Source: Cyanophora paradoxa CCMP329
Taxonomy: Eukaryota > Plantae > Glaucophyta
Reading direction: 5' to 3'
Length of the DNA stretch: 64,000 nucleotides
Assembly: GCA_004431415.1 (NCBI GenBank)
Contig: QPMI01000017.1
Location: 496,001 to 560,000, forward strand
Shown: in pieces, positions 10,498 through 47,021 of the stretch
Position numbering within the stretch: position 1 is the first letter of the stretch
Layout: each line of letters opens with the position of its first letter
Notes under the pieces: generated by a model
Databases searched by the model: none
The model's input: only the letters and a program-made list of their open reading frames with translations
What the model was told of the DNA's origin: nothing
Program-made: the position numbers and the translations under genes

Positions 10498-10824
10498 GCT
10501 CGCTGGTTAAAGCTGGGGAAAGCTGACCCAGCGAGCACTTTCCACCGGCAAACTCTGCTGCCTGAGCGAGTTAGGCGGAGAGGTAGCTCTGGCGAGGGGT
10601 ACGCGTCGCTCCACAGTCCTGTACCCGGGCGCGGCTAGCAAATTCAGCAAAGCGCGGCCTGTTCGCTGACGCAGCGACCTCGCCAGCATTTCGAACTCAC
10701 GGCGCAACGAACTCGCCCTCTGGCGCATGCTTATCTAGCTATAGCTAAGCGCCCAGCCGCATGCCGCGGGTCGCCGAGCTCCGGTCGAGGGTGACCGGGA
10801 CGAGGCAAGGGTCTCCGGAGGAGA

Positions 10825-13445: not shown

Positions 13446-13782
13446 CCTCTGTACACGTCCGACGGTCCCGCCCGAGTGGCGCGCGGCCCCAGCCCCGGGG
13501 GCTGCGCTCACTTAGCGAGCTGCGCACTCCTCAGTGCATTTCTCTCACACACGATATCGAAAAGCTCGCAAAACTCATACTGCAGCTGCAGCTGCCTGCT
13601 GCACGAGGACGGGCGGGATCGAGACTGGCCTGGTTGAAAAAATGTTGAAAATCTAGCTGCTAGGCTACGAATACGCTAAGCATAGAGACCTGTGCACGGG
13701 TACCGAGGGGGGCTGGAGCGTAGAGGCATGGGGGCGGCGGGCTCGCCGGGGCCGGAGGATCGACCAGCTAGCTATAAATAGC

Positions 13783-16711
13783 TTAGTAGCTGGTGTACTC
13801 GGGCCGGGAGTCGCGCCGGGGGCCGCCGCGGCCGCCGCCACGGCCGCCGGAGCGCTCCGAGCGGCCGCCGTACGACGAGCCGCCGTACGAGGAGCCGCCC
13901 GAGTCGCCGCCGCGGGAGAAGCGGCTGCTGCTGCGCCGGCCCTCGCCCGAGCTCGCGAACGGGTCGAAGGTCTCGTAGCCGCCCTCGCGCGGGGCCCGCC
14001 GCGGCCGGTCGTCCCGGTCGCCGCCGTACCGGCGCCGCTCCCCGCCGTACCGGTCGCCGCCGCGCCCGCCGCGGCCGCCGCCGCCGCGGCGGTCACGGTC
14101 GCCGCGGCCGCCGCCGCGGTCGAAGCGGCCACGGCCGCCGCCGCGGCCCATCTCGTCGCGGGAGAGGAGGCGGGGGAGGGTCTCGGGGATCTCGAAGCTC
14201 AGGCTCCGCTCGTCGTGCTGGAGGCCCACCAGCTCCTTCGCCATGTCCGCCGGGAGGTCGCAGAGGCCGCCCTCGGCGCAGAGCTCCATGCGCCCGATGG
14301 CGCCCACCGCCTCCGGGAAGACCCGCCCGATGATCGCCTTGATGGCGCCCAGGGACATGGGCGCGTTGTTGCGGATGAGGACGCAGGTCATCCCCTCGAT
14401 GCTCGTGAGCGCCGAGCGGCGCTTGATGTGCGTGACGCCGGCGATGGCGGCGAGGGCCGCGGCCATGGCGCGGGGGCCCTGCTCCTCCAGCAGCCGGGTC
14501 GCCGACTCCTCGAAGAAGGGCAGCACCTCGTCCTTGACCTTGTCGATGGCCACGACGGTCTTGGCGGAGAGGGCGCGGAGGACGTCCTCGGGCATCGGCA
14601 CGGGCACGATCTCGAACTTGACGCCGATCTCGCGCTCCATCTGCCGCAGGGAGCGCTGCTCCTCGGGCGTGAAGAGGACGATGGCGGTGCCGTCGCGGCC
14701 GGCGCGGCCCGTGCGGCCCGAGCGGTGAATGTACGTCTCCGAGTCGAAGGGTAGCTCGTACTGGACGACGAGGTCGACGGCGGGGATGTCGATGCCGCGC
14801 GCCGCCACGTCCGTCGCGATGAGGACGCGGAAGCGGCCCTCGCGGAAGCGCCCGAGGGTCAGCTCCCGCTGGTACTGCGCGATGTCCCCGTGCAGCACTT
14901 GGCTCTCTGCGGCGCCGCGCGGGTCGGCCCGGGCCCGGGCGAGAAAACGAGGGCGGGCGGGCGGTCGAGCGGACCCTCGTGGATGTGGACGGCCAGGTCG
15001 TCGGCGTCCTTCTTCGTGCGCGTGAAGATGATCACGCGCTCCTGCGGGGCCGCGCCAGGCTCAGCCAGGCCAAGGCGGGCGGGGCGGGGCGGGGCGGGGC
15101 GGACCTTGCCGTAGACGGCGATAAGGTCGGAGAGGATGTCGGAGCGGGCCTTGGCGAAGACCTGCACCGCGATGTGCCGCACCGTCTCCGCCGCCTTCAT
15201 CACCGACGTCCCGATCGTGTCCACCTGCCGCCCGTCCGGATCCCCGCGGTCAGCCCGGCCCGGGGCGCCCCCTCTCCTCCTCCCTCGCCGGCAACCCGCA
15301 CGCACCGACAGGGGCTTGTCCATGTACTTCTTGGAGACCTTGTTGACCCACGAGGGGACCGTCGCCGAGAAGAGCAGCGACTGGCGCTCCTCCGGCAGCA
15401 TGCTGAAGATCTGCCGCGCCGAGATGAGGAAAGGAGAGGAAAGGAAGGAAAAGGAAAGGAGCGACGAGGGCGGACCCGCTCGACGTCGTCGGCGAACCCG
15501 ACGCGGAGCATCTCGTCGGCCTCGTCCAGGATGGCGACCTTGATCTCGCTGAAGTCGATGTCGCAGCGGTCCATCAGGTCCATCAGCCGCCCCGGCGTCG
15601 CCACCAGCACGTCGATGCCCCTCCGCAGCGCGTTCTCTGCGCCCCAGATCATCAGATTTAGATTCGATCGGGCCGGGCAAGCCCGAGGCGTGCGCGGGCT
15701 CGAGGGGCTTCCGGACCGCACCCTGGGGGACGTAAGAGGTGCCGCCGTAGATGGTCGCGACCTCGAGCTCCTTGCCGAGGAGCTCGAACTCGTGTGCGAC
15801 CTGCTTGCACAGCTCGCGTGTCGGCGTGAGGACCAAGCACTCCGGGCCGCGGCCGCGCGTCTTGCGGACGTTCTGCGGGTACGAAAGCTTGCGTTAAAAA
15901 CGATGCGACAAATGCAGCGGCGCCATGCAGCCCACCGTCTTCATACGCTCGACGATGGGGAGGGCGAATGCCATGGTCTTGCCCGTGCCAGTGCGGGACC
16001 GCCCGATCACATCGCGGCCGTCGTAGATAGCATCTGGGGGAAGACGTACGCCGTCAGATAGGCCGCAGCGCGCGCATACGAAAAGGCGTTTGCACCGAAA
16101 GTCTCGAACTGAATCGGAGTAAAGGCATTGATGCCGCGGCGGGCGAGGGTCTTGACGGCTTCCTCCGAGACGCGGAAGTCTGATATGCTGGGAGGCACCG
16201 GCTCCATGTCGCCGATCATGACCTGTGCGTACGCAGGGGTCAAAGGGGTCGAAACGCGGGCGTTGTACGGGGAACGCACGGGGACGGGGGAAATGCGGTC
16301 CTCGGAGGGCAATTTAATGTCCTCTTCCACGTATTCATCGTCCGCCAGCTCCTCGTCGAGAGCGAGCTCGTCGACCGGGACGAAATCTGCTAGCTTCCCC
16401 TCGATCGCGCGGTCATCAGCCTCCGCATCGAATGTAGGAGCTGCGGAAGCCACGGCAAGGCCGCGCGCGCCCTCCAAGGGGGCGGGGGCGATCCCCGCGA
16501 AGCGCACGCTGCTGCCGGTCACGCGGAAAGCTACGGGGGAGCCGAAGAAACCGCGGCGGCTCGATCCGAGGGTTATCCGCTGGAAGTGCAGCTTGTGGGC
16601 ACCAACAGCCGCGTGGTGGCGCGCGACCGCATTGTCGGGGGTCGCGGGATGTTGAACGGCTGAGCTGATGCTGAGTACGGGCCCGCAGAACGCAGGCGAC
16701 GTGTGATCCAT
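13783..16711 (-). CDS. DEAD-box RNA helicase of the DDX21/RH3-RH9 type with GUCT-like region and RGG tail, probably plastid-targeted
   Basis: Q motif (GINAFTPIQ), GRSRTGTGKT, PTRELCKQV, TPGRL, DEAD, SAT, ATDVAARGIDIP and HRSGRTGRAG. RGG-rich C-terminus. Ser/Ala/Arg-rich N-terminal extension MDHTSPAFCG... resembles a transit peptide. Confidence 0.93.
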
Positions 16712-16906
16712 GACGATAGGGGGCGAACGGGGCGTGCTGCAACCAGGGCGAACAAGCAGAATTCGGAAGATACTTGTGGGGCGGTCGTCCGGGTACGGCA
16801 AACGTGAGCGCAAAAAAAGGGGCGGTTCTTAGCCACGCTACGCCGGGCACGTACAACCTGTTAGAGTGATTAGCGAAGGAGAGGCCAGTCGATCCGGGCC
16901 GGCTCG

Positions 16907-18593
16907 ATGCCGGACCCCGCAGTCCTCACGGTCTGCCTGAACGGCGGTGCGCGGGCCCGAACGGCGGCCTCGCGTTCGTGCGCGCGCGTGTTCTGATCAG
17001 CCCCGCAGCGCTTGACGTGTCGGTGAACGCGGGTGTCTTTTGAGCCCCTGCGACGTGGCTGACATCTGGCACGCAGCTCACGCTTGACAAACCGCTGGAA
17101 GTGGGCGCCGTACATGTAGCAAGTGCGGCTGCGCCTCCGCCGCGCCGCCAGAAGCAGGCAGCGCATCGACCTCCGATCCCGCGGCAGAGGGGAAGCGGGT
17201 GTCGCCGGGCGGGAAGGCCAACAACACGGCGAAGGCGCTGGCGGCGCTGCAGGTGCCGGTGCTGGCGACGGGCTTCCAGGGCGGCGAGTCCGGCAAGCAG
17301 CTCATCCGCGGCCTGACCGAGAAGGGGGTCCGCACGCCCGCCCCGCCCCGCCCCGCCCCGCCCCGCCCCGCCCTCTCGTCGCCGCCTCGCGAGCGTGTGC
17401 ACGGACACGGGCGGGCAGGTGGCGTGCGACTTCGTGGAGACGAAGAACGGGACGCGGGCGTGCTACATGCTGGTGGCGGCGGGCCAGGGCCACACCGTCG
17501 TCAACGAGGAGGGGCCCGAGGTCTCCCCCGAGGAGCAGGCCGCCGCCCTCGCCAAGGTCGCCGCCCTCGCGCGGAGGTGCCAGGGCATGGTCCTCGCCGG
17601 GAGCCTGCCCCCCGGCTGCCCCAAGGAGACCTACGCGAGGATCATCGACGGCGTCCTTTCCGACGCCGGCTCCGAGTGCTCCTTCCTCATCCTCGGTCCG
17701 CGATCCCGACCTGAAAATTCCTTTGTACCCCCCTCGTTCCTGACCCCCGCCCGCAGACATCCACTCGGAGGCGCTGCTCCGGGTACACGACGTGCTGCGG
17801 GAGAAGTGGCGGGCCCTGCGCGCCGCCGACCCGCACCGCCGGCCCCGCCTCTTCCTCAAGCTCAACACCGACGAGCTCGGCTCCACCCTCCGCGCCCGCA
17901 GCGTACCCCTCGCCAACACCTCCCCCGTCCAGGTCGCCGAGCAGATGGCCCAGTGCGCGCCCCGCGCCCCCCGTCCCCCCCTCCCCCCTCCCCCGTTCGA
18001 AACCTGTACCCACGCCCCGGGGTGCAGGATAGCCGAAGAGTTCGGCCTCGACGGCGCCCTCATTACCAACGGCGCCCAGGTGCAGTGCCCCCGCCCCCGC
18101 CGGGCCGCCCTCGCGGCGACCGACCGCCCCGGCGTGCAGCCGGCGCACTGCTTCTCGTTCGGGGGCGTGCCGCCGGTGCACGCGTCGGTGCACGGGCACG
18201 CCGCCTCCGAGTCCTTCCACGAGGTCTTCCTCGCCCCGAAGCTCAAGGCCTTCGTCTCCGGCGTCGGCTCCGGCGACGCCTGCAAGTGCGCGGCCAAGCT
18301 CGCTCGCTTGCCCTGCGCATGCCTTGGCTTGGCTTGGCCTCCTGACGGGGGCGCGGGCAGCGCGGGGATCGCGGCGCGGCTGGCGTCGGGGACCTCGTGG
18401 CGCGAGGCCTGCATCTTCGGCATGGCCTGCGGCGCCGCCAACGCCGAGACCCTCGGTGCGCCCCGGCCCCTTCGCCCTCTCGCCCCCCCGCGCCGAGCCT
18501 ACCCGCTCAGAGCCGTGCGACTTCACGCGGATGCGGGCGGAGGAGCTGGCGGCGCAGATCAAGGCCGCCCTCTCCAAGAAGGGCGCCCCCTGA
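16907..18593 (+). CDS. PfkB/ribokinase-family sugar-phosphate kinase of the 1-phosphofructokinase (FruK/LacC) type
   Basis: Spliced: MPDPAVLTVCLNG|ALDVS|LTLDKPLEVGAVHVA|KGKRVSPGGKANNTAKALAAL...GFQGGESG...TRAC...VNEEGPEVS...LAGSLPPG...KLNTDEL...VSGVGSGDAC. Both PfkB signatures and the catalytic Asp are present. Confidence 0.88.
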
Positions 18594-18863
18594 CCCGGAT
18601 CTCCGGTCCCTCTAGATCTTGGCCTTAGCCAGTTTCTCAGAGTCTCGAAGGTCAGCGCTAGCCAGCTTGGCGCGCGAAGCTAGCCTAGTAGTAGGCTAGT
18701 ACTAGTAGGCTTAGTTTTACATGCAGTTTTATTGTTATTGTGCGCTTTCGAATCCGAATTCGCTTAAGCTTGCTCGGCCGCGGCCGGCGCGCGCGTGCGC
18801 CAGCCTCGAGAACGTGTATCCCCCCTCTTGCTGTCAAGGCTCCAAGTTGCTCGAACTTGAAGA

Positions 18864-20647
18864 ATGGCATTCGCCGTCCCCGCCCCGGTTCAGGTTAGCG
18901 TTCCCTCGGGCGTTCAACCAGCGCAGTCGGCGGCCTGCCAGCTGCGCCAGCGCTCGTTCTTCGGGGGCGCCCGGCGGCCCCGCGCGACCCGCTCCCAGCA
19001 GCGCGATGTCGCGTTCAGCGTCAGCGCCGTCTCGGCGCCTCCGAAGCCTGACTTCGAGATGCTGCGCGAGGGAATCAAGAAGCCGGGTGCGTGCGCGCCA
19101 ATGATGCGGGCCGGCGCTGGACCGGCGCGCGCCTGCGCCCCGCGCGCTCCGCTCACGTGCGCGCGCGCGTGCGCAGCGGCGGAGAGCATTCTGACGCCGC
19201 GCTTCTACACGACGGACTTCGAGGAGATGGCGCGGATGGACATCTCGTTCAACGCGGAGGAGCTCGAGGCGCTGAACGCCGAGTTCCGCGTGGACTACAA
19301 CCGCGACCACTTCGTGCGGGACGACGAGTTCAAGCAGGACTGGGACCGCATCGACGGCGAGACGCGCACCCTCTTCATCGAGTTCCTCGAGCGCTCCTGC
19401 ACCGCCGAGTTCTCCGGCTTCCTCCTCTACAAGGAGCTCGCGCGCCGCCTCAAGGACGTCAACCCCGTCCTCTGCGAGTCCTTCGACCTCATGTCCCGCG
19501 ACGAGGCCCGCCACGCCGGCTTCCTGAACAAGGCACGCGTACCCCCCACCCGCCCCTCCGCTGCTGTACCCCCTGACGCCCCGGCCCGCGGCAGGCCCTC
19601 TCGGACTTCAACCTGCAGCTCGACCTCGGGTTCCTGACCAAGAACCGCAGCTACACCTACTTCAAGGTCCGGCGGCTCCGGATTCGAGGTTTCGAACCCT
19701 GTACCCCCCGTCCGACCGTACCCCCGCGTCGCGCGCAGCCCAAGTTCATCTTCTACGCAACGTACCTCTCCGAGAAGATCGGCTACTGGCGCTACATCAC
19801 GATCTTCAAGGTACCCGGGTTCCACTCCCCCCCCCTCCCCCGGTCCCTCGCTCACTCGTACCCCCGCGTTCCGCAGCACCTTCAGGAGAACCCGGACGAC
19901 CGCATCTACCCCATCTTCAAGTATTTCGACAACTGGTGCCAGGTCCGCTTCGCACCCGAGTCCTGTACCCCGCCCCCTCTCTGGTCTGAACGGGTACCCG
20001 GCAGGACGAGAACCGGCACGGCGACTTCTTCGACGCGGTGCTGCGCGCCAACCCCCACATGATCTCCGACTGGCAGGTCCGCCCTCAGGGACTTCAATCA
20101 AAATTCTGTCCCTTCAACTTGATCCGACGAGCGCGTGTACCCCCCGCAGGGCCGCCTCTGGTCCCGCTTCTTCCTCCTCTCCGTCTTCGCCACCATGTAC
20201 CTCAACGACGTCCAGGTGCCGTACCCCCCCCGGAACCTGCCGTACCCCCCTCCCGCGCGCCCCTCACCCCCCTCGAATCCAGCGCGCGGGCTTCTACGCG
20301 TCGATCGGGCTGGACGCGCGGCAGTACGACCAGGCCGTCATCCTCAAGACCAACGACAACGCCGCCAAGGTACCCCCCGCCATTTCCCCCCCCCCCACCT
20401 CCCCTTTCGAGATGCGAACCGGCCCCCTCAGGTCTTCCCGTGCATCCTGGACGTGCAGCACCCGAAGTTCTTCCGGCTGCTGGACGCGGCGGCGGACAAG
20501 AACCTGGAGATGGCGGCGATCAAGGGGGAGGGCCTCGGGGCGAAGGCGAGGAAGACCGGCCTGGCGGCCGGCATCGCCGCGGACCTCCTCCAGGTCTTCC
20601 TCCTGCCCCCCGTCGAGGTCGCCCACAAGCAGGGCAAGCCCCTTTAA
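18864..20647 (+). CDS. CHL27: Mg-protoporphyrin IX monomethyl ester oxidative cyclase (di-iron), nucleus-encoded with a plastid transit peptide; 9 exons
   Basis: [75 protein letters not shown]. Introns: 19087-19176, 19533-19594 (GC), 19667-19738, 19811-19876, 19943-20004, 20077-20149, 20216-20282, 20370-20431. N-terminus MAFAVPAP. Confidence 0.97.
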
Positions 20648-22759
20648 TTATAAGCCCTTCGATCCCATTTCATTTCTTTCCTGTCTCCCTCCACCTCGAT
20701 CCCGCTGGAACCCTGCCAAATGCTTTAATTTCTACCTGGGCGGCCCAGCAACAGGCAGGCAGATCTAGATGTTAACGTTATCGTTGTAGAAATGTATTTT
20801 TATCTTAATATTATTTTGAGCACACTTAATTGTTTTGGTGAATTACCGGCCACAGTCTCTAGACACCAGCACTGCGGGGGCTGCCCAGGGGGCACAAAGA
20901 CAAAAAAGCAAAATAACTAAGGTATCTGTCCCCTAATACACTATAGCTATATATAGCTAGGGAAAACGAAATAAACCAGTCGACGTCTTTTCCGAAGTTC
21001 TAAAGCCTTGAAGAGCAGCCAGCGCGCGGAGCGGCAGCTGCGCATGCAGCTGTGGGGGGCCTTGTTGCAATTGAACCGAGCAGCTTTGGGGGCGCAGGCA
21101 GGCCCGCGATCCTCTAAATGAATTCGCACACACCGAGACAAATGGCTAGAGATATAACTGAGGTGTCCATCTGTGTCAAGTCGAGAGAGGCAGGCCCGCG
21201 ATCGCGACGCGGGCTGGGGCTTCAATGCATGCGGGACAGGCCTAGGGGTTTAGGCTTGCAATTGAAGAACGGGTAGCGCTCATGATCATGCAGGTCCCCA
21301 TGCCAGGGATCGGGGGACGACCGAGGGCAAGTTGTCGGCTTGGCAAGTTGCGAAACAGCCCGGCAGCCTTCGATAAACAGGCCTAGCTATCATGGCTATA
21401 GGAGGCCGAGGTGGCCGGACTCTGAGACTCCGGACTCGGTTCCGGAGCTCGAGGCCCGAATTATACAGCTATAGCTAGTATACGTACTGCCGCATGCACA
21501 GGCTGCTAGCGCTGGCCCGTGCTGGGCCGGCCGGTGCCAGGTCTAGCCAGCCTAACACGTACTGGTACACCCGGCCCGGCCCTAACTTACTGCCGAATTT
21601 CGAAGCCGGCCGGCGGCCGGGCAGGCCGGCGCGGTGGGCACGAATTCAAATTTGGCTCGAAGATTCGAAAAACGATCGCGACAATTACCGGATTCATTGC
21701 GAATTCAATTTTTCCCGCCGTGCTCTCAAAAAAATGTTTTCCCGACTTGATCCGTGTACGCGTGCACGTGGATCGCGGATTCGCGCCGATTCCGCGGATC
21801 TACCGATCGCGACTAATTCGCGCGCGATCGCGAGGGGGTACCAGACGCCTGAGCCGCTGAGCGTTAGCGCTTCCGGATCCGCGCGCTGAGCTGAGGACTT
21901 CAGCTGCAGCCTGCAGACGTCGACTGCAGTACGTACCGTAGAACTAGGGAGGAGCTGGCACAGCGGCTGCAGCGGCAGTGCAGCCTCGAGCTCCACTTTA
22001 GCTTGCGATCGCCCCGAGGGCCCGAGTCGCTGCGGCGCATGCGCAGTGCGGCTCGGCCAGGAATCGAAGTTGCAGGGATAGCTATATAGGACCGCAGCGT
22101 ACGGTACGTATACGCACGCCTCGCCGATCGCGATTCATCGTAGAGACCGATTAACACGCCCTTCACACGCGTACGCAGGAGAGCGGTTATAATTACACGC
22201 GTCTGCGCCAGCAGTTACGCAAGCTTCAAAGCTGCTGCAGCTGCCAGCACGCGTACGCAGCTGCCAGCAGTCGAGGAGGCGCTGGAGAGCGCCAGCCAGT
22301 TGCCACTCGCGATCGTCGATTCATCCTGCAGCTGGAGAATTAAGGCGCGATCGGTTCTCACCGACCGTTGCAGTTGCAGCGGGATCGATTTCCCGGAGCA
22401 AGCTCACGCAGCCCTCACCGGCCGACCGGTTCTCACGCAGCAAGCTCAAGGGAGCGGTTAACGTTACGCAAGCTAAAGCTTGCGGGCCGGGTTGGCCGAC
22501 TCGGCGAGGCCTCGAGCTCGCTCCTGTACATGTACCGGTCCGGGATCCGAGCGCTCGATGCATATATATGCCTAGGCCGATCGCTCCCAGCGCGCGCTAG
22601 CCCGCAAAGTAAAGCATACACGGTCTGACTTGCGATCGTGAACGCAGCTGTGCCGCATTCGCAGTGCAGCCGGCTGTCCCCAAGACGGACCTGACCAGCT
22701 GAGCCTAGGCCTCGAATCCCTTCAGATCTAGACCCCGAGGAGCTTATCCTCTGAATCCG

Positions 22760-25700
22760 ATGGAGGCGCTCTCTGTGGCTGACGCTGATCATGACGGCGA
22801 TCGCGACTCGGCGCCCCCTTTCCACGCCCTGCCGGGCGTCGTCCCCCTCGTCCACGTCTCAGCGGACCTGGAGCCCTCTAGGCCTAGGCCTCGATCTCCA
22901 GCGGTCATCGAGGACGTGGAACATGGGGCTGGCGCCAGCGCTGGGGCGAGCCCCTCCAGTCGCGCGACAGCGCGCGCAGCCCATGGGGGCCATGCGGACG
23001 ACGACGACGGCAGCGCCCACGAATCCGTACGTTCGGAAGCTCTAGAATATCGTGGCCCCCCAGGCCCGTCCCGGGCCCACTACTAAAACGGGCCCACTAC
23101 TAATATTAATTACGACCTGATTACGACCGAATGTTTTTGGTGAATTACTAATTGCAACCTATAGCTAATTGCGACCTAATATACTATATAATTAGATCCC
23201 AGCTGCAGTTCAGTCGGCCGACCGATTTATTACGGATCTTATTGCAATGAGATCGGAGTTAAACGCGTTAGGTCGGGGCCTGCGTCGCCTATAGCTATAG
23301 TTTATTCCTTAGCCCGCCCCCGGCCTATAGCCCGCCCCCACCCCCCCACCACCACCCCTCCCCCGCCCCCACCCCCCCCCTCCCCCCGCTCCGGCCCGTC
23401 CCCCGTCCCCCGTCCCCCCCCCCCCCCCCCCCCCCCCCCGCCCACCTCCGCCCCGATTGCAAGCTCATGCTCCTCATGCTCATGAGCACACGTGCACGCT
23501 CTTGATCCCCTGACTCGCGCCCCCTGCGGCGGCAGGCTTCTTTTGGAAGGCCAGGCCGGCGCGAGGTCACGTCCGGCCTGGACCCGTTGGAGGGCCTCGA
23601 CCCCGAGGCCGGCAGTGCTGGCGCCGGCGCTGCTTCGGTTGGAATCTCGGGGCCGGCGGCCCACCCGCCCGCGGCGCTTGCCGAGGCCCTCAGAGGCGCC
23701 AGCTGGGGCTACCCCCAGGCCTCGGCAGGGAAGGAAACGCTGCCAGACCCGCGACCCGACGTGCCCGTGGTTTACCGCGACGCGTGAGTCCCCGAACGGC
23801 ACGGCTCAGCGGCTCTTGCTTGACAGCCGTCCTTTAATTTGTTCTTCGTCATTTGAGTGCCGCCGCAGGGCGTTCAACTACTGCCGGGGCCAGGCGGAGG
23901 ACCTCGCGGCGGTCAAGGCCCTCATCGAGCTCTTCGGGTCCAAGGACATGGGCCTGTCCAAGGTACCGGTGTTGGCAGCTGCAGCCGGGCCAGGTCACGA
24001 CCCGCAGGTCTGATTCGCCTTGCAGACCTGGTTCGACGACGAGCCGCTGGCACCATCGGTCTTGAACAGAGCTGGGGTCATCGTCGATCACCTCCGGTGA
24101 GCCGGCGCTTGTCGTTCAAGCTCTTCAGTCTGCTGAATATTTCACGCTGCGTCTGCAGGCTAAAGCGGATATCGAGCGGACTCGTGGGAGCAAATGCCGT
24201 CGTGGTCGTCTTGACTGAGAGTGCGTGCGGCTTATGCCTCTTTTATATTTCTTTCTGCATGGATTCGGAGCTCATGCGTGCTTTGCAGGCTGGTTCCTTT
24301 CCGAGTAAATATTCTTGCATCTGCAAGGTCTGGCCATGAAGCGCCGTGACTGACGCGCTTGTTCCTTTCGCCCGCAGGCAATGCCTGCTCGAGCTGCAGC
24401 ACGCGCTGTGGCTGGGAAAGGCTGTCGCGACCGTCGTCCTCAGCAGCAAGTCCGAGACCGCGAACGACCTCGCCGACCGCGCGAAGAAGCGCTTGTGGGA
24501 AGCGGCGAATCCAAAGAAGAAGAGCGAACAAGGCGGCGATCCGTTGAAGGACGCGTACGGGAACGGAGAATTCAGCGAAGAAGAGCAGCAAAGAAGGCGG
24601 AAAGAAGAACAACGTGTCAAAGAAGAATTCGAAACCAGTGCGCGCTTGAATAAGTCACTGGCGTTTATTGTAGAGGCGCAAAAGGTGCCCATCGGTATCG
24701 AAATCCCCACTTGAGCCTCAGCTTTCGCATTGACTTTCGATTTTAGATCCTGGGAAAGAACGTGGACCAGAACTCGGAGATCAGAATGCCGAACAACCTC
24801 AGCACAAGTCCGCAATCCTTTTGCTCCGACTCATTTGCGGGTGAACATGTACATGTGTTGCAAATTGATGCCGCAAGCAGGGGCGCTGGCAGCCGATGAC
24901 GCGTTTTCTGCGGACTGCTTGCAAAGATGCCTGCAGCTCAGGCGCAAAATCTGGGTTGGTCCAGTTTGATTCGAAGACGATCTGATGAGTCTGAACGCAC
25001 CCGCAGTCGCCCTTGCCCAGACCGCGCAACGTTCCGAAAACCTATGCTGCGTACGCGCGCCGCATCCTTTTTGCTCGAATGTACAACGCTCAGAATTGGT
25101 GTGCTCGCAGTGCCTTCTGCTACTCGCGGACAAGCGATCGAGACACTCAGGCCATGCGGGTAATCCGGTCGGTCCTCGAGCCCCATCTCAACGACAGCCG
25201 TGAGAAACTCCTTAATTTTGAAGAGAAACTCCTTGAGGTGATCATGAGCTTGATTATGGCCAGATCTAGAGCATTAATATATTCTGAATACTCTTCATTG
25301 CCATCTTAGGTCTGGCCTGCACCGGAAGATGAAAAGCACCAAAGCAACAGCGAGATGGACGAGCTTGAAAGGTGCTTCCGCTCCTGACGTTGTTCGTATC
25401 GACAGGCTTAGCACCGCTCGCCCTTTTGTGCAGGCTACAGCGCGTCACAGCCGCAATCGCGGGTGCACACGCGCTGATCGTGGTCCTCACGGAGGGTCCG
25501 TCGAACCTTTTACCTTGAGCTAGATGTTCAGCTTCTCCGGACTTGACTGACTCGTGATCTTTTGTTCAGGTTGGTTCAAGTCTCAGTGCGTAGTTTGTGT
25601 TGAGTGCTGCTTCTGAGAAAAGAAAAGAGCTGATGTGTGCGGGGCGCAGGCGGTGCATGGAAGAGCTCGAGCACGCACGGATGCTGGAGAAGACCATTCT

Positions 25701-28700
25701 CGCCGTGGCTGCCGATTTTCAATCCGAGGATCAGCTTCTCGGGGGGCGATCGCAAACTGAGGACTCGGAACGTAAGAGACGAGAGAAGGTGCACGTGGGT
25801 CGACGCCTCTGTGCACGATTGGCGTGGCAGCTGATTCTAGTTGCATTCAACAGATCATCGAGGAACTCAAAAAACACCACCCAATTGTATTCATCTCTAA
25901 AATCTCGGAGATGTCTGCTGAAGACAAGTCGAGCTGCAGAGACCTTGCGCAAGCACTCATGGTGCAAGCTCGCTAAGTACTAGTGATCAGGGAATCATTC
26001 TCTTACCAACACTGCACGCAGCCGCCTCTTGGAAGGCCGCAAACGGTGCCCCGGCACTTTGACGCGTGAGTACTAGCGCCAGTCACCTGTAAGGCTCCTT
26101 TCTGTAATCTATAGCTAATCTGTTTTCAATGCTCGCAGAGCCTTCACGTACTGTCGCGGGTCGCCCACGGATCTGAGAATGGTGGAGGAACTGACACGGG
26201 CAATGAACGTGCACGGTTTTCAGGTGCTGTGTATTCGTTCAGAAACCTCCGCACTGTCTGAGCTGTAGTACCGTACCGCGATATCGATAGCTCTGGTTCG
26301 ATGCCACTCGAAGCGAGGCCGCTTGGAGCGACAAAGAGGCTAGCCGGTGCGGTGTTCCTGATTTGAAGGGATCCCTTCCCGAATTACGCGATCATCGGTT
26401 TGCAGGAAGACAGGATCTGCAGTTGCGCAAGCGTTCGAAGGCGCCAACGTGTGCGTCGCTGTCGTCACGGAAGGTAGCTGTAATTTTCCCCAAACGAACA
26501 AGCTGCGTCTCGTTAACGTTGACCTGTTGCGCTCGCGTGCGTGGAATCTTCAGCCTGGTTTCTCTCGAGGTGAGGCTTGTATACAATTGGATCCCCGGAG
26601 CGATGAGACAGACAAAAAGCCGGCTCTGTTGAGCGCGCTGCCGCAGGCAATGCCTCCTCGAGCTGCAGCACGCCCGGTGGCTGGCGATGGGCAAGGAGGA
26701 CGCCATAGTGGCCGTCGTCGTCGGACCGTCGTCTCTAGATACACTGGCGCACCGAGCGTGCGACCGCGTTCGCTCATCTCCAGAAACGCAAGCCTTTCCT
26801 ACCATCAATGAGATCGAGCAAGCCCGCCAAGTGCGCACGATCGCGACGGTCACTGCATGAGCTCGTCAGACGCGCTAACGTAAGTGGTTCTCAGCAACTG
26901 CAACTGTCGAAATACAAGATCGTTCAAGTACCTGAGCGTGTAGAAAGCTTAAGCGGCAAGCCGAGCTTCTTCTCACGCAAGAAAGCGGAGGAGGGTCGCG
27001 ATCGCGAGGGCTCCTTCGCAATCGCGTGCGAGAAGCTCATGCAAGCAATCCGGGTGCATATGGGTCTTGACCTCTCCAAGTTGCTGTCCTCGGCTGATGT
27101 TCGACCGCCAAGGTTGCGACGACATCGGTGGAAGAGGTGCATGGGCTTGATTTGACGTTTTGCGGGTATTCGTGTCTCATGCGAATTCCTTCAGCCGGGC
27201 AAAGAGATTCCGATTCCTCGATACGACGTGATGATCAGGTGCGCTTGCGCTACTTAGCTGTTAGCTGTAATTAAATTTTATGTAATTAGATGCTGTGAGC
27301 TACTTCTTTGATGTTAGATGCTCACGCTTGTCCTCTGCAGCTACCGAAGGATGCAGAAAGAGGGTCCGCTTGCAATTGCTCGCAGGAAGCCGATTGAAGC
27401 ATCTACTTAGATGTCCGCTCAGAGATGGAGGTGCTGCGGAAGCTGCTGCAGGAGAAGAATTCGACCGTCTGGTGCGACGTCATGCAGGGGGCGATCCCTG
27501 CGGGCGCAAAGTGGTGAGCTGCGCTTGATGGCGGCTGACGCAAACGTCGCTGATCTCGATTCGCACCTTCTTCTTACAGGGGGCAGACGATAGCTGCAGG
27601 TCCGCGCGCACATCTCATCTAGATCTCACCAACGTGCATATGCATTTGTTTAAATCCGACTCATATTCGTCATCAGCGATCAAGGGGGCGGACTATTTCC
27701 TGGCGCTTCTGACTCCCGGTGCGCGCGCGCGGCCTCGCGTGTAGGAGCTGTCGCGCAATGACTCACATGCTGCGGCAGAATACTTCGAGGTCAATCGATG
27801 ATATCCTTTGGAGCGCATCTCATATCCTCCCGCGCAGTCGGTCAACTGCCTGGACGAGTTCGAGTACGCCGTCTCGCACCAGAAGCGCATCGTTCCGGTC
27901 GAGTTGGAGTTTGTCCCGGAGTTCCCGCCATACCCACCGCCGGGCGCTAATGCCGCGGAGAGACTGTTCTTCTGGTTCATCGGTCCTTCCTCTGCTCTCT
28001 TCGAGCGCCGTCTGATTGTACGTGCAGGAGGAAGACGATGTGCCGAAAGCGAATTTACGCATGGTGCTTCTTGCAATTGCTAGCCTGTATCCCTGCCCTC
28101 GAGCTCCGATCCGCTGCGCATCCAACGCTATCACAGGCAATTCACAATGTTTCCCGAGCTCTTAGGACTTTCTCTAAACCGCGAGGAAGTGCTCAAGGAA
28201 AAGAGAGGCGATCCGGCTTCCGACAGCGATTTTAACAAGAAGCTCAGGGGACTCGTTGATGCGATCCAAGTGCGCCCCGTTGGAACCTTGGCCCCGGGAC
28301 TTTTCCCAGCGAATGATGTCTTCAAATTCCAGACCAACCCTGACGACGTCCGACTTCACACGCACCTCACGCTTCGCGCCGACAATTATAAGGAGGGTGC
28401 GCGCCGCCCGCGGCCGGATTCCGCCGTCTTGCGCTGCGTGACCTGAGCACTGCGGTAGCTCTGCAGCGCAAGACGGAAGAATCCGCGGCCGGCCGCGTCA
28501 CGCAGACCTCGAAGCGCTGGGTTTCGCTGTCCAGCGCACAGGAAGACATTCGCAATGTGTCCCGAGGCCGTTTCATTTGATCCCAAAGCTTGTCGTCTCA
28601 TGAACGTGCAGGCGCCGCGGGAGAACAGAACGAACGCAGAGGCATTCCTTCTGCAGGGCTACGCTCTGGAGCAGGCGCAGACATGGCTCAAGCAGGCCGG

Positions 28701-31700
28701 ATACTTGACTGGCGGCTCATCCATCCTCAGGAACCTGTTCAACCTTGGGCGCGCGTTCGACGTGGACTTCTCGCTGAAGGACACCCCCGGCACAGCCCTG
28801 CTTTCCTGGACACACACCGACTCTCGCACCTACGAATTCTTCCGGATCGAGAGAATACGCGGGGGAGGAGCGCTAGCGCCAAAACCCGAGCCGGGCGGCA
28901 TCATCCCAGTGGATCCGAAAACATCCGAGTACTCATTCAGAGTATCTGATCTCCAGGGCGACGGTTCGGAGGCGTTCAGAGTCGTCCCCGTCGACGTGGA
29001 AGGCAAGGACGGTCCCGCGTCTGCGCTCTGCCGGCTTTCGGAGTCAAATGCTTCGAATTCAGCGCCGAACGCGCCGTCGAACCTGAAGCTCAGGCCGCTT
29101 GACAGCGGAAAGTCAGCCACGCCCACAGCAGCCACTGCCGGATCCAGACGCGGGGTGCTGACGTGGACGTGCCCCAAGGCCGGCATTCCGCAGTCGTACC
29201 GCATCTATCGCAGCGAGAACTACAAGGCCAGCAGCCTGAACGATTTTACGTTTCTCACCAGCGTGCACGGAGATGCAACCAGCTACGAAGTCGCGAAACT
29301 GTCGAAGGGCCACCTTTTTTGCGTGACTGCGGTCTTTGCGGAGGCGGAGAGTCTCCCTTCCCCGCCGTGCAGCCTGGCCAGCGCCGTGAACGAAGGGGAC
29401 TTTGTCACGCCGATCGAGGACGGGTCGAGGAAGCCGTGGAACCTGCGGATCAAGGAGACGCAGGAGCCGCCCAAGGCGACCATCGAGCACCGGGTCCGCG
29501 TCTAAGCGATTAGACTATGACGCTCCTTTCCATCTGACTCCAACTTTGCAGGTCCTCGTAAAGTACAGCCTGGAGCATGCGCAGAAGAGAAAACGCCGGA
29601 TCGTGCTGATCACGATGATCATCGCAGCAGGTGCCTTATTGTAAGTGCAGGCGGGCCTAGGCGCACTATGCTCATCCATTGTGGCTGCAGCTCTTATCTC
29701 GGCGGCAATTGTGTCCGCCGTCTTTGCAGGTTCAAATCTGTCGCTCCTATTTGCGATTCAGCGTTCGTCTAAGCAAATATGCAGTCGACGCTGCGGACAA
29801 GAAGCGGGCGGCAGAGGAGAGCCTCAGGATCGCGACGGCTGCGCTTCAAGAGGCGACTGACCGGCAGACGATTTCCGCAGCCGTTCTTCGCAGCTCCAGC
29901 GATCCGGAGAGCGCTATGCTGTTTGCCCTTGAAGCGTACGCCAGCTCGAGCAGTTCAGCCAACCCCTCGGTGCAGCGCGCGGCCGAAATCACACTGCGTT
30001 CGGCCCTCGAGTCCAGCTCGTCTCGGTATCTGTACACGGGATCGGCCATCTCCGACTCTCCAACTGCTCGGCGCCGCACGCGCCAAACGCTTGAATCACA
30101 GCCATCACCGCACGCGCACGAGCGCACGCTGCTCGCGGCAGAGTCGCCGCTGAAAACGACAATCGCGGAATTCGTCGCCACAAACACTTTCTATGACTTC
30201 CAGGTGCATTCTCGTTTCTTAGCACGAGTGCGCTCCTCTAATCACACTTTGCGCAGACTTTTTCTGCGTTCTCTCCAAACGGGAAGTTCGTGCTCACCGC
30301 CGGCGCCGGCATTCTTGCTCCCACAAGCCCATTCACGTCGGCGATTCCTTCCACCATCGTCGATCCCACAGAAAGCTTTCAGGTCTGCATATGCATGTTC
30401 GAATTCAAGCGAATCGCCAAACGTCAAGGTCGCCGCTTCTGAAATTTCTTGTCGCCTGCCCCGCAGTTGAAATTGCTCGCGACGGTGTACGATACGGAAA
30501 TGAACCCTGTGTACAGTGTGCAGGATCTGCTGGTCGCGTCTCCAAACAAGACTAGGTCAGCACTTTCGCCTTCTACAATTGCAGGTCTCGAGCTCGTTTT
30601 CCTGATGCATCAGCAGCTATTGGGCGTACCACCTGGGCGCAATGCGCATGTTCGTCGATGACTACGCCAACATTCTTGTACGTGGGTTTCTGAGGGTCTC
30701 TAGATCTTTGTCAGAAGTAACGCAGCACTAGATCCATGTGAAGCGGCAAGGCCCGGAGGTTTCGGTCTGCAGCATTCCAACCTTTGTGTTTGGCCGCGGC
30801 TGCCTCCCTCGCACCACTGGGCTTCTGCTTCTGTACAGGCAGGATCGTCCTCAGCAGCGCGGATGCTTGAAGAAAGACCGGGACGGCGGCAGAGCTTATC
30901 TGCTCGACATCCATGACGTTTTTGTCGGTCCGCTCGCTATATTCGCTGTAGCCTGAATCCCATTCTTACAGAGGCGCGCTGCTCTCGCCGCAGGTCGGGG
31001 CTTTACGGCGGTGCTGATCGGAGAGAACTACGATCCATCCGGCCAAGGACTGGCGTGGAAAGGCTGGGAGAACCGGAACTTACACACGGACTTGTATTTA
31101 GATGCTTCGATTCGAATGAAGAGGCGCAATCGCATTGTTCTCAGAGTGTACAAGGGACCTGCCCAAGCTCTAGATGCACCTGTGTTAAACCAAGGCGAAT
31201 GTCACTTCTTCCATACACAGCAGACGCGCGCTCTAACCATTTGTCCGCAGGGTACCTGCCGAATTCACCGGAGCTGTGCCAGTTTTATTCCGACAGCTGG
31301 GGTAACGTCAATCTGGGAGGTTCGAGTCCCTTGGCCCAGCCCGCAATCATTGGCCATCCTAAACAGCATCTTTTCATGCAGACGACTTTGGCTTGGGGAA
31401 TACAGAACCTTGGCTGTCCGAGGACGGGTTTAGTACAAACACGGTCGCCGAGACTTTCCCATCTCCAAACAGCGCCGCCTTTTCGAGGCACGCTTGCATC
31501 AGCAGCGGCACTGAGTTCTTGTTCGCCAAAGCTATGACCGCCCCACCTGGATACGACGGGCATTACACTGAGCAAGGACAGCTTCTCAAAACGTTGGCCA
31601 TTCCTCTTCGGGCACTTTCAGAGTTCGTATCAGATCAGCAGCTGCTCGGCGAAACGAAGCAATGGTCTGCAAGCGTCGTACAGTTTGGTTCGAGTGGTTC

Positions 31701-34700
31701 GAACTATATGACGAATCATTCCAACAACTTGGCATTTGGCATCTCGGACTTTGATGTTTCACCCAACTGCACCGAGTTCGCTGGTATTCTGCGAATTCTT
31801 GGGACCATCAATGTGTACGGCACGTACAGCTTTGAACCTGTGGCTGGGCTTCCGATGGGGCACTTTTTCTTCTCTGGCCACAGCGAATCCAATCGTCACT
31901 ACATTGTTGGCCTCCCGACGTTCCTCGCTCCGAGCTCGAGAGTCCTCTCAACGAAATGGAACGACTTCGTCTCAACAGTGACCCGCAACCAGCTGCCGAA
32001 ATCCAACCTCGCGTCTCTCACCTGCTGGGATAGCAATCGGACGCTCCGGCGTCGTGAACTGGATCAGATGTACGACGGGGCCCCCTGCGAGTTCCAGAAG
32101 CGCACAAATCCTGACTTTGTGAGCGAAGCCAAAGGGAATCTGCAAGGGGGAGACCCAGGTGCGCCGGATCGATTTAAAGGGAACACAACCAAGAGCTTAG
32201 ACGCGACAGATCTGGTGTTGGTGGGCATCATTCCGGACCCGTTGCGTCGGCTGATGGGGCGGAACGCGGTGCGCTCTGCAGCAGAGGTTGCAATTGCTTG
32301 AGCTGTTGATAATGATGGCTCGCCGTCAGGCAAAGCCAGATGCGCGCGTTCAGGGAAATCACTCGCGAGGCCTGTTTGGCGCTCTGTTGCTTCGGAAAGC
32401 TGTCGCATCTGGCTCGGAGAGCGTCGGTTGCATCCGCAATCACTTGGTTTTCGTGCCCCATATTTTCGACAACGAGAACGTCTATGATCACAATTACGAG
32501 TGCGAAGACATTTCGCCTCTGAATATTAATATTAATGCAGTAGATCCTGCAATTGACAGCAGCTTGTTGCGAGCAGGACAGTTGCCGAGCTGGACTGCGG
32601 GGTTGACTACACGGGTAGCCCGCTGGACCTCCGCCGCAAGGCGATGGCGGTCAGTCGACGTTCGCTTAAGCTTGCTGAGGCGCTCACCAAAATGAGGCAT
32701 CGACTGAGAATTGGACTTGGGGGCAGATGTCGGTCAAAGCGGACGGAGCTGTCGTCGCAATCGGCGGGCTATCCGGCACAATCACAGCGCACGGCGTCAA
32801 CCTCGAGCAAGCAACCTTCGTGCGTGCATGCTTCTTCTCAATTTCAACAGACCGCGGTCGGCCCAATGCTCTCAGCAGAGAAGCACTGCCTCTCTTGCCG
32901 GAAACGTGCGATTCCTAGTTCAGATCCCATCAAGCTCTCTGTTTCTGGCCTCGGACGACAAAGGAAATTTTGCAAAAGTGGGGCTTGACTTGGACACAGT
33001 GTATCAGAACCAGGCATGCGCACGTCTGGAATCGCGTTTGTTCGGAATCTCTTGCGTCTCGCAGTTCTGATTATGAAGAACGCATGCGCAGGAAACCAGC
33101 GTAACGCAGCTTCAGGCAAAACTCGCCCAAAAGGACTCCAGCTCAGATTTCATGGCTCCGGGCCTGGACCTTACCAGGGTGTTCGACATACCGGCTTCCG
33201 TTCAAGGAGCACTTGGCCCCAACGGAGGCTTTTTCACCACTTGCCACCTGCTGGTTCTGGGCCAGAAGCGGGCGGTTTTCTGGGATGCTGACGGCAGTTT
33301 CTTCGCGGCGAGAAGGGTGCACCTGACGCAGATCAGCAAGCCGGTCGCCCTTGAGACTGTGCAGCACGCGTTGGACAGCTCTGTCAGGTGTGCACGCTTG
33401 TGGCCTGTAACTGCGCATGCTCGCCAGGTTGCAGTTTCCACAGTGACTGATGCTTGCGGCTCCTTTACTTCGACTAGATCCACGCAACTGCAAGAGCTCT
33501 GCGCCGATTGTAATGATGCCTCCAAGCGCTATCGATGTGATTTGATACCCCTTCAGCTTGATTATGATTCCGCTGGCGATTCCGCTGATTCCGCCGATTT
33601 CCTTGCAGTCTTCGGGATTCACGCGCCAACGGGGAACCTTATGGCTTTGCGGGCGGACGGAGGGGTGCTCTTCCAGACGGACAGCACCAGCGGAACATGC
33701 AAACACCAGTCGAGGCTAGTTCCTACCAAAACATGGTGCAAGCTTCCCCGAGATCGACCGAGGTCGATTTACAGAGCTAGTAATGATGGTTTGCAGGCAA
33801 TGGAAGAAATCGGAATCTGCACTGCCGTGGTCTCAGTCAGAAGCAAACGGGATCACATTATCTGCATCCTTCAACGCGTTTACGCAACTCGCAAGCACAC
33901 CTGACACCGAGGCTTTTCTTCGCATCCGGACTCGGACGAGACACGTTCCTGAATATCCAGACCCCTTTCCGTTGAACAGAATTGACGTGTTGCGGGATGC
34001 CCCTGCTTCGGGCGATTTCCGAACGCACTCGATGTTCTTCCCGAGCGCTCAAGAAAACGCGCGGCCACTGGCGTTCTTCCGCAGCTCGCTCGCAGCGATG
34101 GCCGGAGTCATCTACCCCCTCGTAGACGTGAGCCGTGCACGCCTAGGCCTGTTATTTCCCGAAGCTCAAGTTCGATCAGGGCATTCCGCAAGCTGACCAG
34201 GCGACCTCGATTTTTGAGCTGAGCCCTCTGAGCCGAGCGGCAATCTTTCCAGCTGCATCGGAGCACAGGCCATGGCGGAAGCCAGACTCTGCTCCTTTCG
34301 CTCTTATCTCCGGTCTGCTGTATTTCTCACATGCCAATGCCGTGCGTAATCTTCGAATTCTCGCTCCTGTTGCAGATTTCCAACATTCCAGTGGGTTTGA
34401 TGCTAACGGGCTGCGTTGCGCATTCTGCTTTTCAATGGTGCCGCATCCTGTAGTTCTTCGTAACGCTGCCTGCAGTTTGCTGACAATCGTGAACTCTGTA
34501 CCTGCAGTTCTACGTTGCATTCGAAAAAGAGCCCAAGTGGGCAGACGTTGTCTTCGGAAAGAGGACCCCGTACTACAGTGCGACAGATTACAGTTCGGTT
34601 TATATCGACGAAGGTCTCGGCACGTTTAAGCTCGGAATGGACACCGAATCGACCGAGCGCGTTGCTATATACCTGGCGGCAAGAAGCTCGGTGCGCGCAA

Positions 34701-37700
34701 CGTGAACAGCACTGCCCCCTCTGGGCCATGAACCGCAGTGCAGGTTTCATCCGCGTGGACGGCGAGCGCCGCTCCTCTCGTCCCTGCATGGCCGGGGGCG
34801 CCGCTGCGGGCCTGCCGCCGCACATTGTTTTGGAACAATGTAGCCATCGTCGACCTTCGCTCGTCCGTGCTCGCCGTTCCGATCAGCGGGGAGGGATTCG
34901 ATGCAAAGAACATGGTGCAAGTGCCCCAGATGACGAAAGCGCCAGCAGTGGATGCCACAATTCCAGATCAGTATTGTTCTAGTGGCGTCGTCGACGAGGC
35001 ATATCCGGATGGCTTTGTGCCTTTGGATCCTCCTTACCCACAATACTGCGTCCGCTACCGGCAAGCGCAGAACCGATTGATTAAGAACACGAGGAATGGT
35101 GTCGGCCAGCCGGATTGCTCGGTATACGTCACAGCGGCAACTCCTTCTATGCTGTGGATTGTCGATGCGACAGGGGCGCGCGGCTTTTCGTCGTTCACGT
35201 CCCTACAACGGTTTAATTGGAACGCGACCAGTAAACCTCTTTCGACCAGCAAGCCCGACGTTCTGATTCCGTTCAGCCGATACGCTCCCCGGGCCTCTGA
35301 AAGCGGTCGATTCGTCGCCGTCTGGATCAGCCTGACCTTGCTTGAGGTTTCTGCCTTTTAATTGAATCTAACGTAGGAGTTCTAGATCTTACTAGAGGTT
35401 CCGCTCTGACTCCGACCGTAGATCTACGACCTCGAGAACGGCGCGGGCGCCAAAGAGCTCGCGCGGCAGGTGCCCATTGAAGAGCAGTACGTCAATCAGA
35501 TTGCTTTGTTGCCTGCGTACGTAATGGTATCCAATGACGGGTAAGCATATGCATCTAAGAGAGGCTTTTCAGCGACGCTTTCGAATTCCGATCTCGCTCC
35601 GCGCATGCAGTCGCCACATTGCTCTCCGCTACCTGGACCAAAACGGGCACATGGCGCTGCGTGTCGTCGACCTCTCCAGGAGCGCGCTCGTTCAATCCAC
35701 GTGCTCCGTGATCAGCCGCGGCTTTGACAGAGACGAGCTGACGGCCGTCTACGGGGAGAGCTACAACCGCACCTCCAGACTGGAATCCGGAACTTGCCCG
35801 GCGTCATCGGGGGCTTTGCGCAAGCGGAAGCGCTCATCTTCGAGCGTCGCAGTCGTCCTCAAACCGTCGGCGCCGACCGTGCAAGTTCTATCTAATGGTC
35901 CGAGCAATCTCACCGTACGCGTCTACAACACCCGAAGCGGAGACGCGGTCCCCGCGACTGCTGCGGTCTCCTGCAGCCCGCCCGGAACCCAAGGGCCGGC
36001 CCTCGTCGGCGCCGGCGAGCTTCAGTACTCGATACATCCGCGGCTGGACGTGGATGCTTCCACCTGGAGTGTATACGACTTCTATTTCGAGGACAGCCAG
36101 CCGTCCTATGTGCTGGCCGAAGTTCGCCTCACCGGAGCCGCGGCCGACACGGAGTACACGTGCACATCCACGGTCACAAGCTCTGCGGGGAAGTCGCTCG
36201 CCGCCACTGGGATGGGACGCACGCGGCCGCTTGGCTACATCCCCGCGCCACACAGACGAGCGGCCCAGGAAGATCCACGCGAGTACTGTAAAATGGCTGC
36301 GCAGATCGGGCCTGCGTACGACTGCCGTTCTGAATTTCCTGATACTGATCCAGGTGCCTGTTTCGAATTGCAAATTGATCGTGCTCGCGGCTGCTGAAAC
36401 TCATCCCCTGCTCTTAGCTTCGTCCCCTTCTGCCGGCCTTGCGACCCCTGTGTCTTGCTCGTCGTCACCGTGCAGCCTGACGGCCGGCATGGGCTGGTTG
36501 GTTTTCGATGACGGGAGCGGGAGCTCGGACTACGCAAAGAACGTTCGCAATGCTTGGTAGGCCAACCAAGTCTTCACGGTGGTGCTCGTTCGCGCCAGTC
36601 TTCACGAGCTTGCGCAGGTTAATTACTTCCGGAGTTCCCGGGATGACCGCAATAGAGCTTGAGTTCCAGAGCTTTGAGACCGAGAGAAACTCCGACTGGG
36701 TTACGGTGAGACCTGCTTGATTAATATTGCTAGCTGTATAACAACTCATTTATAAGCTCCAGATTTATAACGGGCCAAACGGGGAAAGCGGCATCATCGC
36801 CAAGCTGTCTGGGCATCTTTCAATTTCAACAACTACGTACAAGAGCAGCGGGGGGATGTACATCGAGTTCTCGAGCGATGGAGGGATCAACGCACCGGGC
36901 TTCGAAGCTCGATTCAGGGCTACCAGCTCCTCGAGTGCGTTCCTTTGTACATGTTGTTTGACGCTGGTCCTGCAATCGTCGATCAGCTCATATCTCGGCC
37001 TTGCGTATTTCCGTTTCAGACTCGGTCGTGACGCCCGTGCCGCTCCCTCCGCCCGTCGACGTCCCCAACCCCCTGGTTAAGAACCTATTGGCCGGAATCG
37101 ATTGGTCCGCTCTAGAGGACAGCAGTGGAAGTGGTGACTACCAATACGTCTGGGAGCGGTGGTAGGCTTCTATCTTTAATTTTAAATTTGAGCTAAACAG
37201 TGCGAGACAAAAAACTTAGCATTCTTTAGCTCATGTCTCTCGCGATCGATGTTGACGCCGAGAAACAGGTTGATCACGGCGCCCAACGGGATGGGAGTGA
37301 AGATCGAGTTCACAAACATCTCCACGCAGATCGAGTTGGATTTCGTCACAGTGCGCCGAAAATATTAATCGAATTTTCTACATGCGCATGCGCAGCCGAT
37401 GACTGACGCAAGTCAGGTCTACGATGGGGCCGCGGACGACGCGGGGATGCTGGCGCGGCTCTCCGGGAGACCGCCGGTCCCCCGCTCATACACGAGCAGC
37501 TCCAGATTCATGTTCATCACGTTCTTGCCCGGGGACTATGACAGGAGTTACAGGACGTTCTACGGTTTCGAAGGCTTCCAGGCACGTTTTATGTCTGCAA
37601 CGCCTGCAGGTGCGTATGCAAATCTTCCTTGAGGTCCTCGAAGCCGCCTTGACATGTCCTTAACGTCCTTGGCAGCCTCTCCGCAGTACGTCCTGTGCCC

Positions 37701-46625: not shown

Positions 46626-46677
46626 TCGAATTGAGCTGTTTTCTGATTGAAAAATACTATGTGGCACGGCCTCGTGG

Positions 46678-46988: not shown

Positions 46989-47021
<33 letters not shown>

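Follow-up and report, generated by a model that had tools for sequence, protein, structure and literature searches.

A window of 64,000 nucleotides (nt) from the Cyanophora paradoxa CCMP329 assembly (contig QPMI01000017.1, positions 496,001 to 560,000 of the forward strand) was analysed and found to carry on its + strand an intron-rich gene in which one unit is repeated four times in an open frame, each copy being homologous to TIR domains and each placing a glutamate (Glu) in the alignment column of the catalytic Glu of TIR enzymes that cleave nicotinamide adenine dinucleotide (NAD+). The explanation preferred here, which is given an even chance of being correct, is that a large receptor-like gene carries these four paralogous TIRs in one frame, in an N-terminal tail that is presumably cytosolic, all of them with the helix-C Glu at the catalytic position. 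If receptors carrying such tails were brought together, the TIR arrays would be expected to join in the head-to-tail manner known from other TIRs, and TIR1-3 would most likely strengthen binding or act as scaffolds. This explanation does without an intramolecular tetramer formed in advance, which is not supported. The presence of four TIRs in a single chain would be unusual for a receptor, here that of a glaucophyte.

The conserved glutamate and the assignment to TIR domains

The Glu sites were located using a six-frame pattern scan, in which QCLLEL, RCMEEL, QCLLEL and NCLDEF (TIR1 to TIR4) were found on the + strand with Glu codons starting at exactly 24391, 25663, 26660 and 27856, the positions at which the original prediction had placed them. 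The pattern [SAQRNW]CxxE[LFIM]xxA had no other occurrence in any of the six frames of the window. The segment from strand C to the Glu was ungapped in both the hhalign and the merged MAFFT alignments, with L-T-E-S-W-F-L-S-E-Q-C-L-L-E-L facing L-S-H-N-F-L-N-K-K-W-T-Q-Y-E-L of TcpC, and the Glu of all four units fell in the column of TcpC E244 (AbTir E208), which is invariant in 120 TcpC relatives. E244 of TcpC and E208 of AbTir are needed for NAD+ cleavage (PMC11374754, PMC10641520), and the earlier claim that the four Glu residues occupy the position essential for this reaction is therefore upheld in 4/4 units. The alignment supports the equivalence of the shared Glu with the catalytic residue known from TcpC and AbTir, and its invariance across copies that are pairwise only 23-36% identical hints at selection on the residue itself. 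Matches of the TcpC TIR in the PDB comprised AbTIR, TcpB, PdTIR, TLR1/2/6, SNC1, L6, ROQ1 and RUN1.

For the assignment of the units to TIR domains, exons were joined by coordinates inside scripts and then compared with fetched sequences, the reference being TcpC of E. coli CFT073, annotated as an NAD(+) hydrolase, and its 120 relatives, all of which carry Pfam PF01582 and PF13676. Alignment of the four core units with the TcpC family using hhalign yielded a probability of 91.4% (P 8.9e-7, score 46.2) over 103 columns running from strand A to beyond strand D. Among 200 column shuffles the maximum probability was 2.5% and the score had a mean of 11.8 (standard deviation 2.2, maximum 20.9), and the reversed alignment scored 14.2. 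The full-length units gave 83.5% (P 8.4e-6), and a negative control in which the four units were aligned with the ThsB-type TIR-like family PF08937 (another CFT073 protein) gave 0.1%. Taken singly, TIR1 (P 5.6e-4), TIR3 (P 1.1e-3) and TIR4 (P 0.017) matched the TcpC family in hhalign, and TIR2 did not do so significantly (P 0.17); despite this, TIR2 is counted among the TIRs because internal homology ties it to the other units. The signal came from profile-profile comparison only, as TcpC alone or a TcpC hidden Markov model (HMM) run against the joined units returned noise to weak matches. A feature search of the ESM Atlas with the TIR4 exon 27838-27984 (49 residues) placed it nearest to the named clusters TIR_2, TIR and ThsB_TIR with a score of 0.88; the same search with one TIR3 exon gave no match, and neither did tblastn of a TIR4 exon against plasmids. 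Taken together, the alignments support four TIR domains in one reading frame.

When bacterial genomes were scanned with the helix-C pattern, a single locus was obtained in a Planctomycetota metagenome-assembled genome (contig positions 609-692, ..RRCLDEFEHAV..), which was rejected as a chance match since it has no TIR context. In E. coli CFT073 (NC_004431, 2764-5301), the genes next after tcpC encode a TIR-like protein of ThsB type (PF08937) and a macro-domain protein, so that three NAD/ADP-ribose-related genes stand side by side, adjoining mobQ and traD.

Gene model, repeat units and predicted receptor layout

The gene model was built from the window DNA and comprises 27 exons (23749-29502, + strand) with 1120 codons and no stop. 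Every junction in it is GT..AG with the frame kept from the TIR1 unit to a fibronectin-like (FN3-like) open reading frame (ORF), and 21 of the 26 introns measure 48-85 nt. In the stop-to-stop reading the units appear as short coding pieces recurring four times on the + strand. The GC content at third codon positions (GC3) of the exons is 0.715, compared with 0.446 at second positions and 0.536 in the introns, a pattern as for coding sequence. The receptor gene lies inside a block of 54-60% GC (20000-40000), and 68-82% GC is reached in 1-19000, 40000-54000 and 58000-64000; its exon GC3 compares with 0.82-0.95 in the long ORFs of the flanks, and no Pfam match was obtained for ten long ORFs that lie within the GC-rich blocks or near them.

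All features are on the + strand. The model opens with an upstream exon end (23749-23783) that encodes a Pro-rich lead-in, ..PRPDVPVVYRD(A), before TIR1 and has a phase-2 GTGAGT donor. The TIR1 unit (23869-24954) consists of exons 23869-23962, 24026-24096, 24159-24220, 24289-24304 (a 16-nt micro-exon), 24378-24694 and 24881-24954, the last being an extra exon added after the 27-exon model; its Glu codon is 24391-24393. The TIR2 unit (25007-25961) begins with the linker exon 25007-25050 (SPLPRPRNVPKTYA), followed by 25111-25237, 25310-25371, 25434-25495, 25570-25585 (16 nt), 25650-25771 and 25831-25961, with the Glu codon at 25663-25665. The TIR3 unit (26022-27112) likewise begins with a linker exon, 26022-26065 (PPLGRPQTVPRHFD), followed by 26139-26223, 26291-26346, 26406-26473, 26554-26569 (16 nt), 26647-26757 and 26813-27112; the Glu codon is 26660-26662, and the junction 26757|26813 is one of two in-frame choices. 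The TIR4 unit (27400-28396) comprises exons 27400-27513, 27580-27599, 27677-27718, 27779-27789 (an 11-nt micro-exon), 27838-27982 and 28166-28396, with the Glu codon at 27856-27858 in the motif LLTPEYFESVNCLDEFEYA..RIVPV. A Lys/Glu-rich charged insert of ~70 residues lies between strands D and E of TIR1 (~24440-24650) and does not occur in the other units.

Each Glu site has the same repeat context, in which an exon ending ..GA(N/H/D)xxxxV(V/L)LT(E/P) is followed by the micro-exon and then by the C-x-x-E exon. The micro-exon encodes x-WF(L/K)S-x in TIR1-3 and E-YFE in TIR4, ending in phase 2 in the former and in phase 0 in the latter. The Glu exon starts with (Q/R)C(L/M)xEL, or with SVNCLDEF in TIR4, and the hydrophobic strand that follows reads AVATVVL, TILAVAA, AIVAVVV and RIVPVEL from TIR1 to TIR4. 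Homology between units was assessed using phmmer in a set with 2000 shuffles, and all real pairs ranked above all shuffles, with E-values of 1.5e-15 for TIR1-TIR3, 9e-13 for TIR1-TIR2, 7e-6 for TIR2-TIR4, 6e-4 for TIR3-TIR4 and 0.03 for TIR1-TIR4. All four units have in common a phase-2 intron ahead of strand A, another of phase 2 in the BB/helix-B region and a phase-1 intron following strand C, and a further intron before strand B is common to TIR1-3. As the units share intron positions as well as the micro-exon, the array is taken to have grown by duplication of a unit that already bore introns. Short Pro-rich linkers join the units, with ~15-25 residues from helix E to the next strand A. 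The lead-in before each of TIR1-3 has the form ..LP(D/R)PRxxVPxxY..A or ..P(R/D)PRxxVPxxY.. (23749-23783, 25007-25050, 26022-26065) and in TIR2 and TIR3 occupies a separate 44-nt exon each; it could serve as a spacer or docking motif.

An atypical box 1 had been claimed for TIR1-3 and is indeed present, reading AFNYCR, AFCYSR and AFTYCR. The implied difference from a canonical box 1 is harder to place at TIR4, where a canonical-looking piece lies nearby and is unreachable by canonical splicing. This box-1-like piece (27151-27228, +) reads ..RVFVSHANS.. (FDVLRVFVSHANSFSRAKRF.. / FDVLRVFVSHANS.. / ..RVFVSHANSFSRAKRF..) and resembles DFFISHAKED of TcpC. It is bounded by an in-frame TGA upstream (27148-27150) and a TGA at 27229, with no AG acceptor before it, and falls in a 287-nt intron of the model, where 60-80 nt is usual. 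Its inclusion in TIR4 was rejected, since no canonical splice leads in or out; the only canonical in-frame path leaves ..SSADVRPP at a phase-2 donor after 27112, resumes at 27400 and gives S-IYLDVRSEMEV... Manual joining of the piece to DVRSEMEV.. puts it at exactly the distance from the strand-B W-C-D that is seen in TcpC, and for this reason it may be what is left, stranded, of the first exon that TIR4 originally had. An assembly error at this point is less likely, because every sampled 31-mer of the stretch occurs in a 2012 DNA-type run. TIR1-3 form a derived triplication with an odd box 1, and TIR4 is the most bacterial-like unit.

An FN3-like long exon or ORF (28535-29502, +) follows TIR4, to which an in-frame join is possible. 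In a phmmer search of 1.84 billion representative proteins, the 316-residue ORF located after TIR4 matched multi-FN3 proteins (1.7e-22 and weaker) on which Pfam fn3 is present; the matches in this library were the ORF itself and generic FN3 proteins, TIR relatives were not found with this query, and no encoding contig was on record for the ORF. Further 3', at 29585-29641 (+), KRKRR followed by the hydrophobic stretch IVLITMIIAAGALL was read from the translation and is likely a membrane anchor. Its basic residues face the TIR side, and an N-in, C-out receptor therefore fits, in which the TIR side would be cytosolic. A metagenome scan and a word search with the stretch after the putative anchor gave no match. 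CUB-like signatures (..ELQFTSFETExxYDWVxV.., ..GFEARFR..) were observed in several + strand ORF pieces at 36400-38800.

Prospects of activity and alternative explanations

The observations that weigh against the preferred explanation come from the remaining active-site residues, from searches with unjoined sequence, and from the gene model and its expression. Mutation of the strand-A Ser (AbTir S140, TcpC S176), the helix-A Arg (R151, R187) or the strand-B Asp (D167, D203) inhibits both enzymes. From TIR1 to TIR4 the Ser position reads C, S, C and V and is kept in 1/4 units, and the Arg position reads K, R, E and E; the Asp is kept in TIR1, TIR3 and TIR4 and lost in TIR2, which has E in the MAFFT alignment or A (VWPAP) when aligned by introns. 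This residue set, whose rules are drawn from one bacterial subgroup, does not occur as a whole across the units. The BB-loop Gly is kept in TIR4 (..IPAGAKW.., by eye), and the BB loops of TIR1-3 are longer, unlike the reference. The aromatic residue four positions before the Glu (Glu-4; AbTir W204, TcpC W240) is replaced by Q, R, Q and N. Such an aromatic is found in 12/12 TIRs that make a cyclic ADP-ribose (ADPR) product (W in nine, Y in two, F in one), and AbTir W204A loses most of its cyclisation (Manik et al., bioRxiv 10.1101/2022.05.07.491051). NADase activity is lost in L6 W131A and ROQ1 W82A and weakened in SARM1 W638A (bioRxiv 10.1101/2022.05.07.491051); TcpC, which produces ADPR only, works without W240. 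Judged from these residues, NADase activity of the units is possible, and cyclase activity is disfavoured because the aromatic at Glu-4 is missing in all four; the units are predicted either to be inactive or to release ADPR alone. The cyclic ADPR-type signal foreseen in the original prediction is thus disfavoured, as all tested cyclase TIRs carry an aromatic where these units have Q/R/Q/N.

Pfam, PDB and profile searches with unjoined sequence were negative. No TIR match was returned by Pfam for 15 stop-to-stop pieces (single exons, 5-105 residues), and none of relevance by the PDB, which was queried both with a TIR4 exon and with a profile built on the last exons of the four units. Only noise was obtained when the six-frame fragments of the whole window were scanned using the TcpC-family HMM; hhalign of an exon-only alignment with the TcpC alignment gave no match, just five columns at strand D. 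The single-exon results say little, because the exons are 5 to ~105 residues long. The TIR call consequently rests on script-joined exons, since no exon by itself matches a TIR model or structure, and the joined exons were selected partly for a TIR-like look. In the gene model, the 16-nt and 11-nt micro-exons are predictions, the N-terminus of TIR4 is uncertain, and the frame was carried from TIR1 to the FN3 exon, the links to the anchor and the ectodomain being putative. As for expression, four studies of this species provided one RNA-type run each, and no contig over 23500-28300 was found in these four RNA-type runs; the stretch was found, introns included, only in DNA-type runs of 2012 and in no RNA-labelled run. 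The RNA result is absence of evidence only, because contigs lose rare transcripts.

The alternative that carries most weight, possible if still doubtful, is that the four TIRs are non-catalytic scaffolds like the TIRs of TLRs and adaptors, recruiting other TIR proteins, with the Glu kept for structural or ancestral reasons. The Glu by itself is a poor predictor of TIR activity: TLR2, IL-1R9 and IL-1R10 have it and show no detectable in vitro activity, the likewise Glu-bearing TirB and TirD of Dictyostelium fail to cleave NAD+, and neither NAD+ cleavage nor a cyclic ADPR (cADPR) product has been detected among them. A 2026 screen that used E. coli to express eukaryote TIRs bearing the Glu obtained a cADPR isomer from 12/61 animal and 4/29 protist proteins (bioRxiv 10.64898/2026.04.20.719644), and the low protist count, together with the several changed residues that AbTir and TcpC require, favours a scaffold. 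Against this stand a Glu that has stayed invariant in four such diverged copies, TLR4 and many other eukaryote TIRs that turned out to be catalytic, and a Trp that TcpC does not need. It is unlikely that the locus is instead a silent or decaying gene copy, the product of a recent tandem expansion no longer expressed. The lack of RNA-type contigs, the box-1-like relic stranded in an unusually long intron before TIR4, and a TIR2 that has lost the strand-B Asp and matches TIR profiles loosely would all agree with decay; however, 1120 codons are open over 27 exons with GT..AG intact and a coding-type GC3, rare transcripts drop from contigs, and a receptor of immune type might be expressed only once the cell is challenged.

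The assembly envisaged in the original prediction, where a single chain would pack its four TIRs into an RPP1/ROQ1-like tetramer with composite active sites and clustering would lead to NAD+ depletion or a cyclic ADPR-type signal, is considered very unlikely. It draws on four Glu-bearing TIRs in one frame on short linkers whose spacing would let neighbouring TIRs touch, on TIR NADase sites that are formed between two TIRs, and on the use of four TIRs in trans by ROQ1 and SPARTA. Nevertheless, 0/4 units have the aromatic that every known cyclase TIR carries and that L6 and ROQ1 need, the strand-A Ser is replaced by Cys or Val in most units, no expression was seen in the four RNA-type runs, and a pre-assembled active form would be toxic unless gated, with no gate evident. 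Less probable again is a complete TIR holoenzyme in one polypeptide, in which the chain would fold back into a tetramer with two active sites, like the one that four separate chains form in plant resistosomes and in SPARTA, and the ectodomain would keep it inactive until ligand binds. Under the preferred explanation of a receptor tail with four Glu-bearing TIRs, the gene provides a natural test of the TIR number and of the residues beyond the Glu that are needed for activity, with the Glu in 4/4 units and the cyclisation-linked aromatic in 0/4. TIR domains are now regarded as ancient NAD+-processing immune enzymes whose protist roles are just being mapped; until its transcription and activity have both been demonstrated, the practical value of the gene is limited.

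Comparison with known TIR systems

In the literature searched, no paper linked Cyanophora with TIR domains, tandem-TIR proteins had two copies only, and "four TIR domains" always referred to four-chain assemblies. The mollusc Toll-2 family (PMC4929906) resembles the Cyanophora gene in having tandem TIRs in one eukaryotic protein, itself a single-pass receptor as predicted for Cyanophora, but has two TIRs that lie C-terminal to the membrane helix (type I), where the four TIRs described here are N-terminal to the putative helix. Dictyostelium TirE has two diverged tandem TIRs in place of four (bioRxiv 10.64898/2026.04.30.722052).

The RPP1 and ROQ1 resistosomes also bring four Glu-bearing TIRs close together, and the plant motif W-C-L-x-E-L resembles the C-L-x-E-L found here. 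Their TIRs, however, belong to four chains assembled by NB-ARC oligomerisation and need the Trp, whereas here one chain without the Trp would be carried on a predicted membrane receptor; as ROQ1 depends on the Trp that these units lack, its tetramer offers a weaker comparison. SARM1 is a TIR NADase that is active only when its TIRs are packed together, with E642 as the catalytic Glu. The Cyanophora units share a Glu at the equivalent place in helix C, but SARM1 has one TIR per chain, packs through a SAM octamer and uses W638, and SAM and ARM domains are not present here.

The TcpC group differs from the Cyanophora gene in having one TIR after a coiled coil, in contrast to four copies in one intron-split eukaryotic chain, and in its residues, with the Trp of WxxxE where Q/R/Q/N occur here and a strand-A Ser-His where Cys, Ser or Val precedes Arg. 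The spacing ..LS/T-x-x-F-x-x-S/K-x-x-x-x-x-E-L.. around the catalytic Glu is nonetheless common to this group and the Cyanophora units, and TcpC, AbTir, TcpB(BtpA) and PdTIR (Pfam TIR_2, PF13676) share with them, by profile-profile alignment, the same domain, colinear from strand A to beyond strand D.

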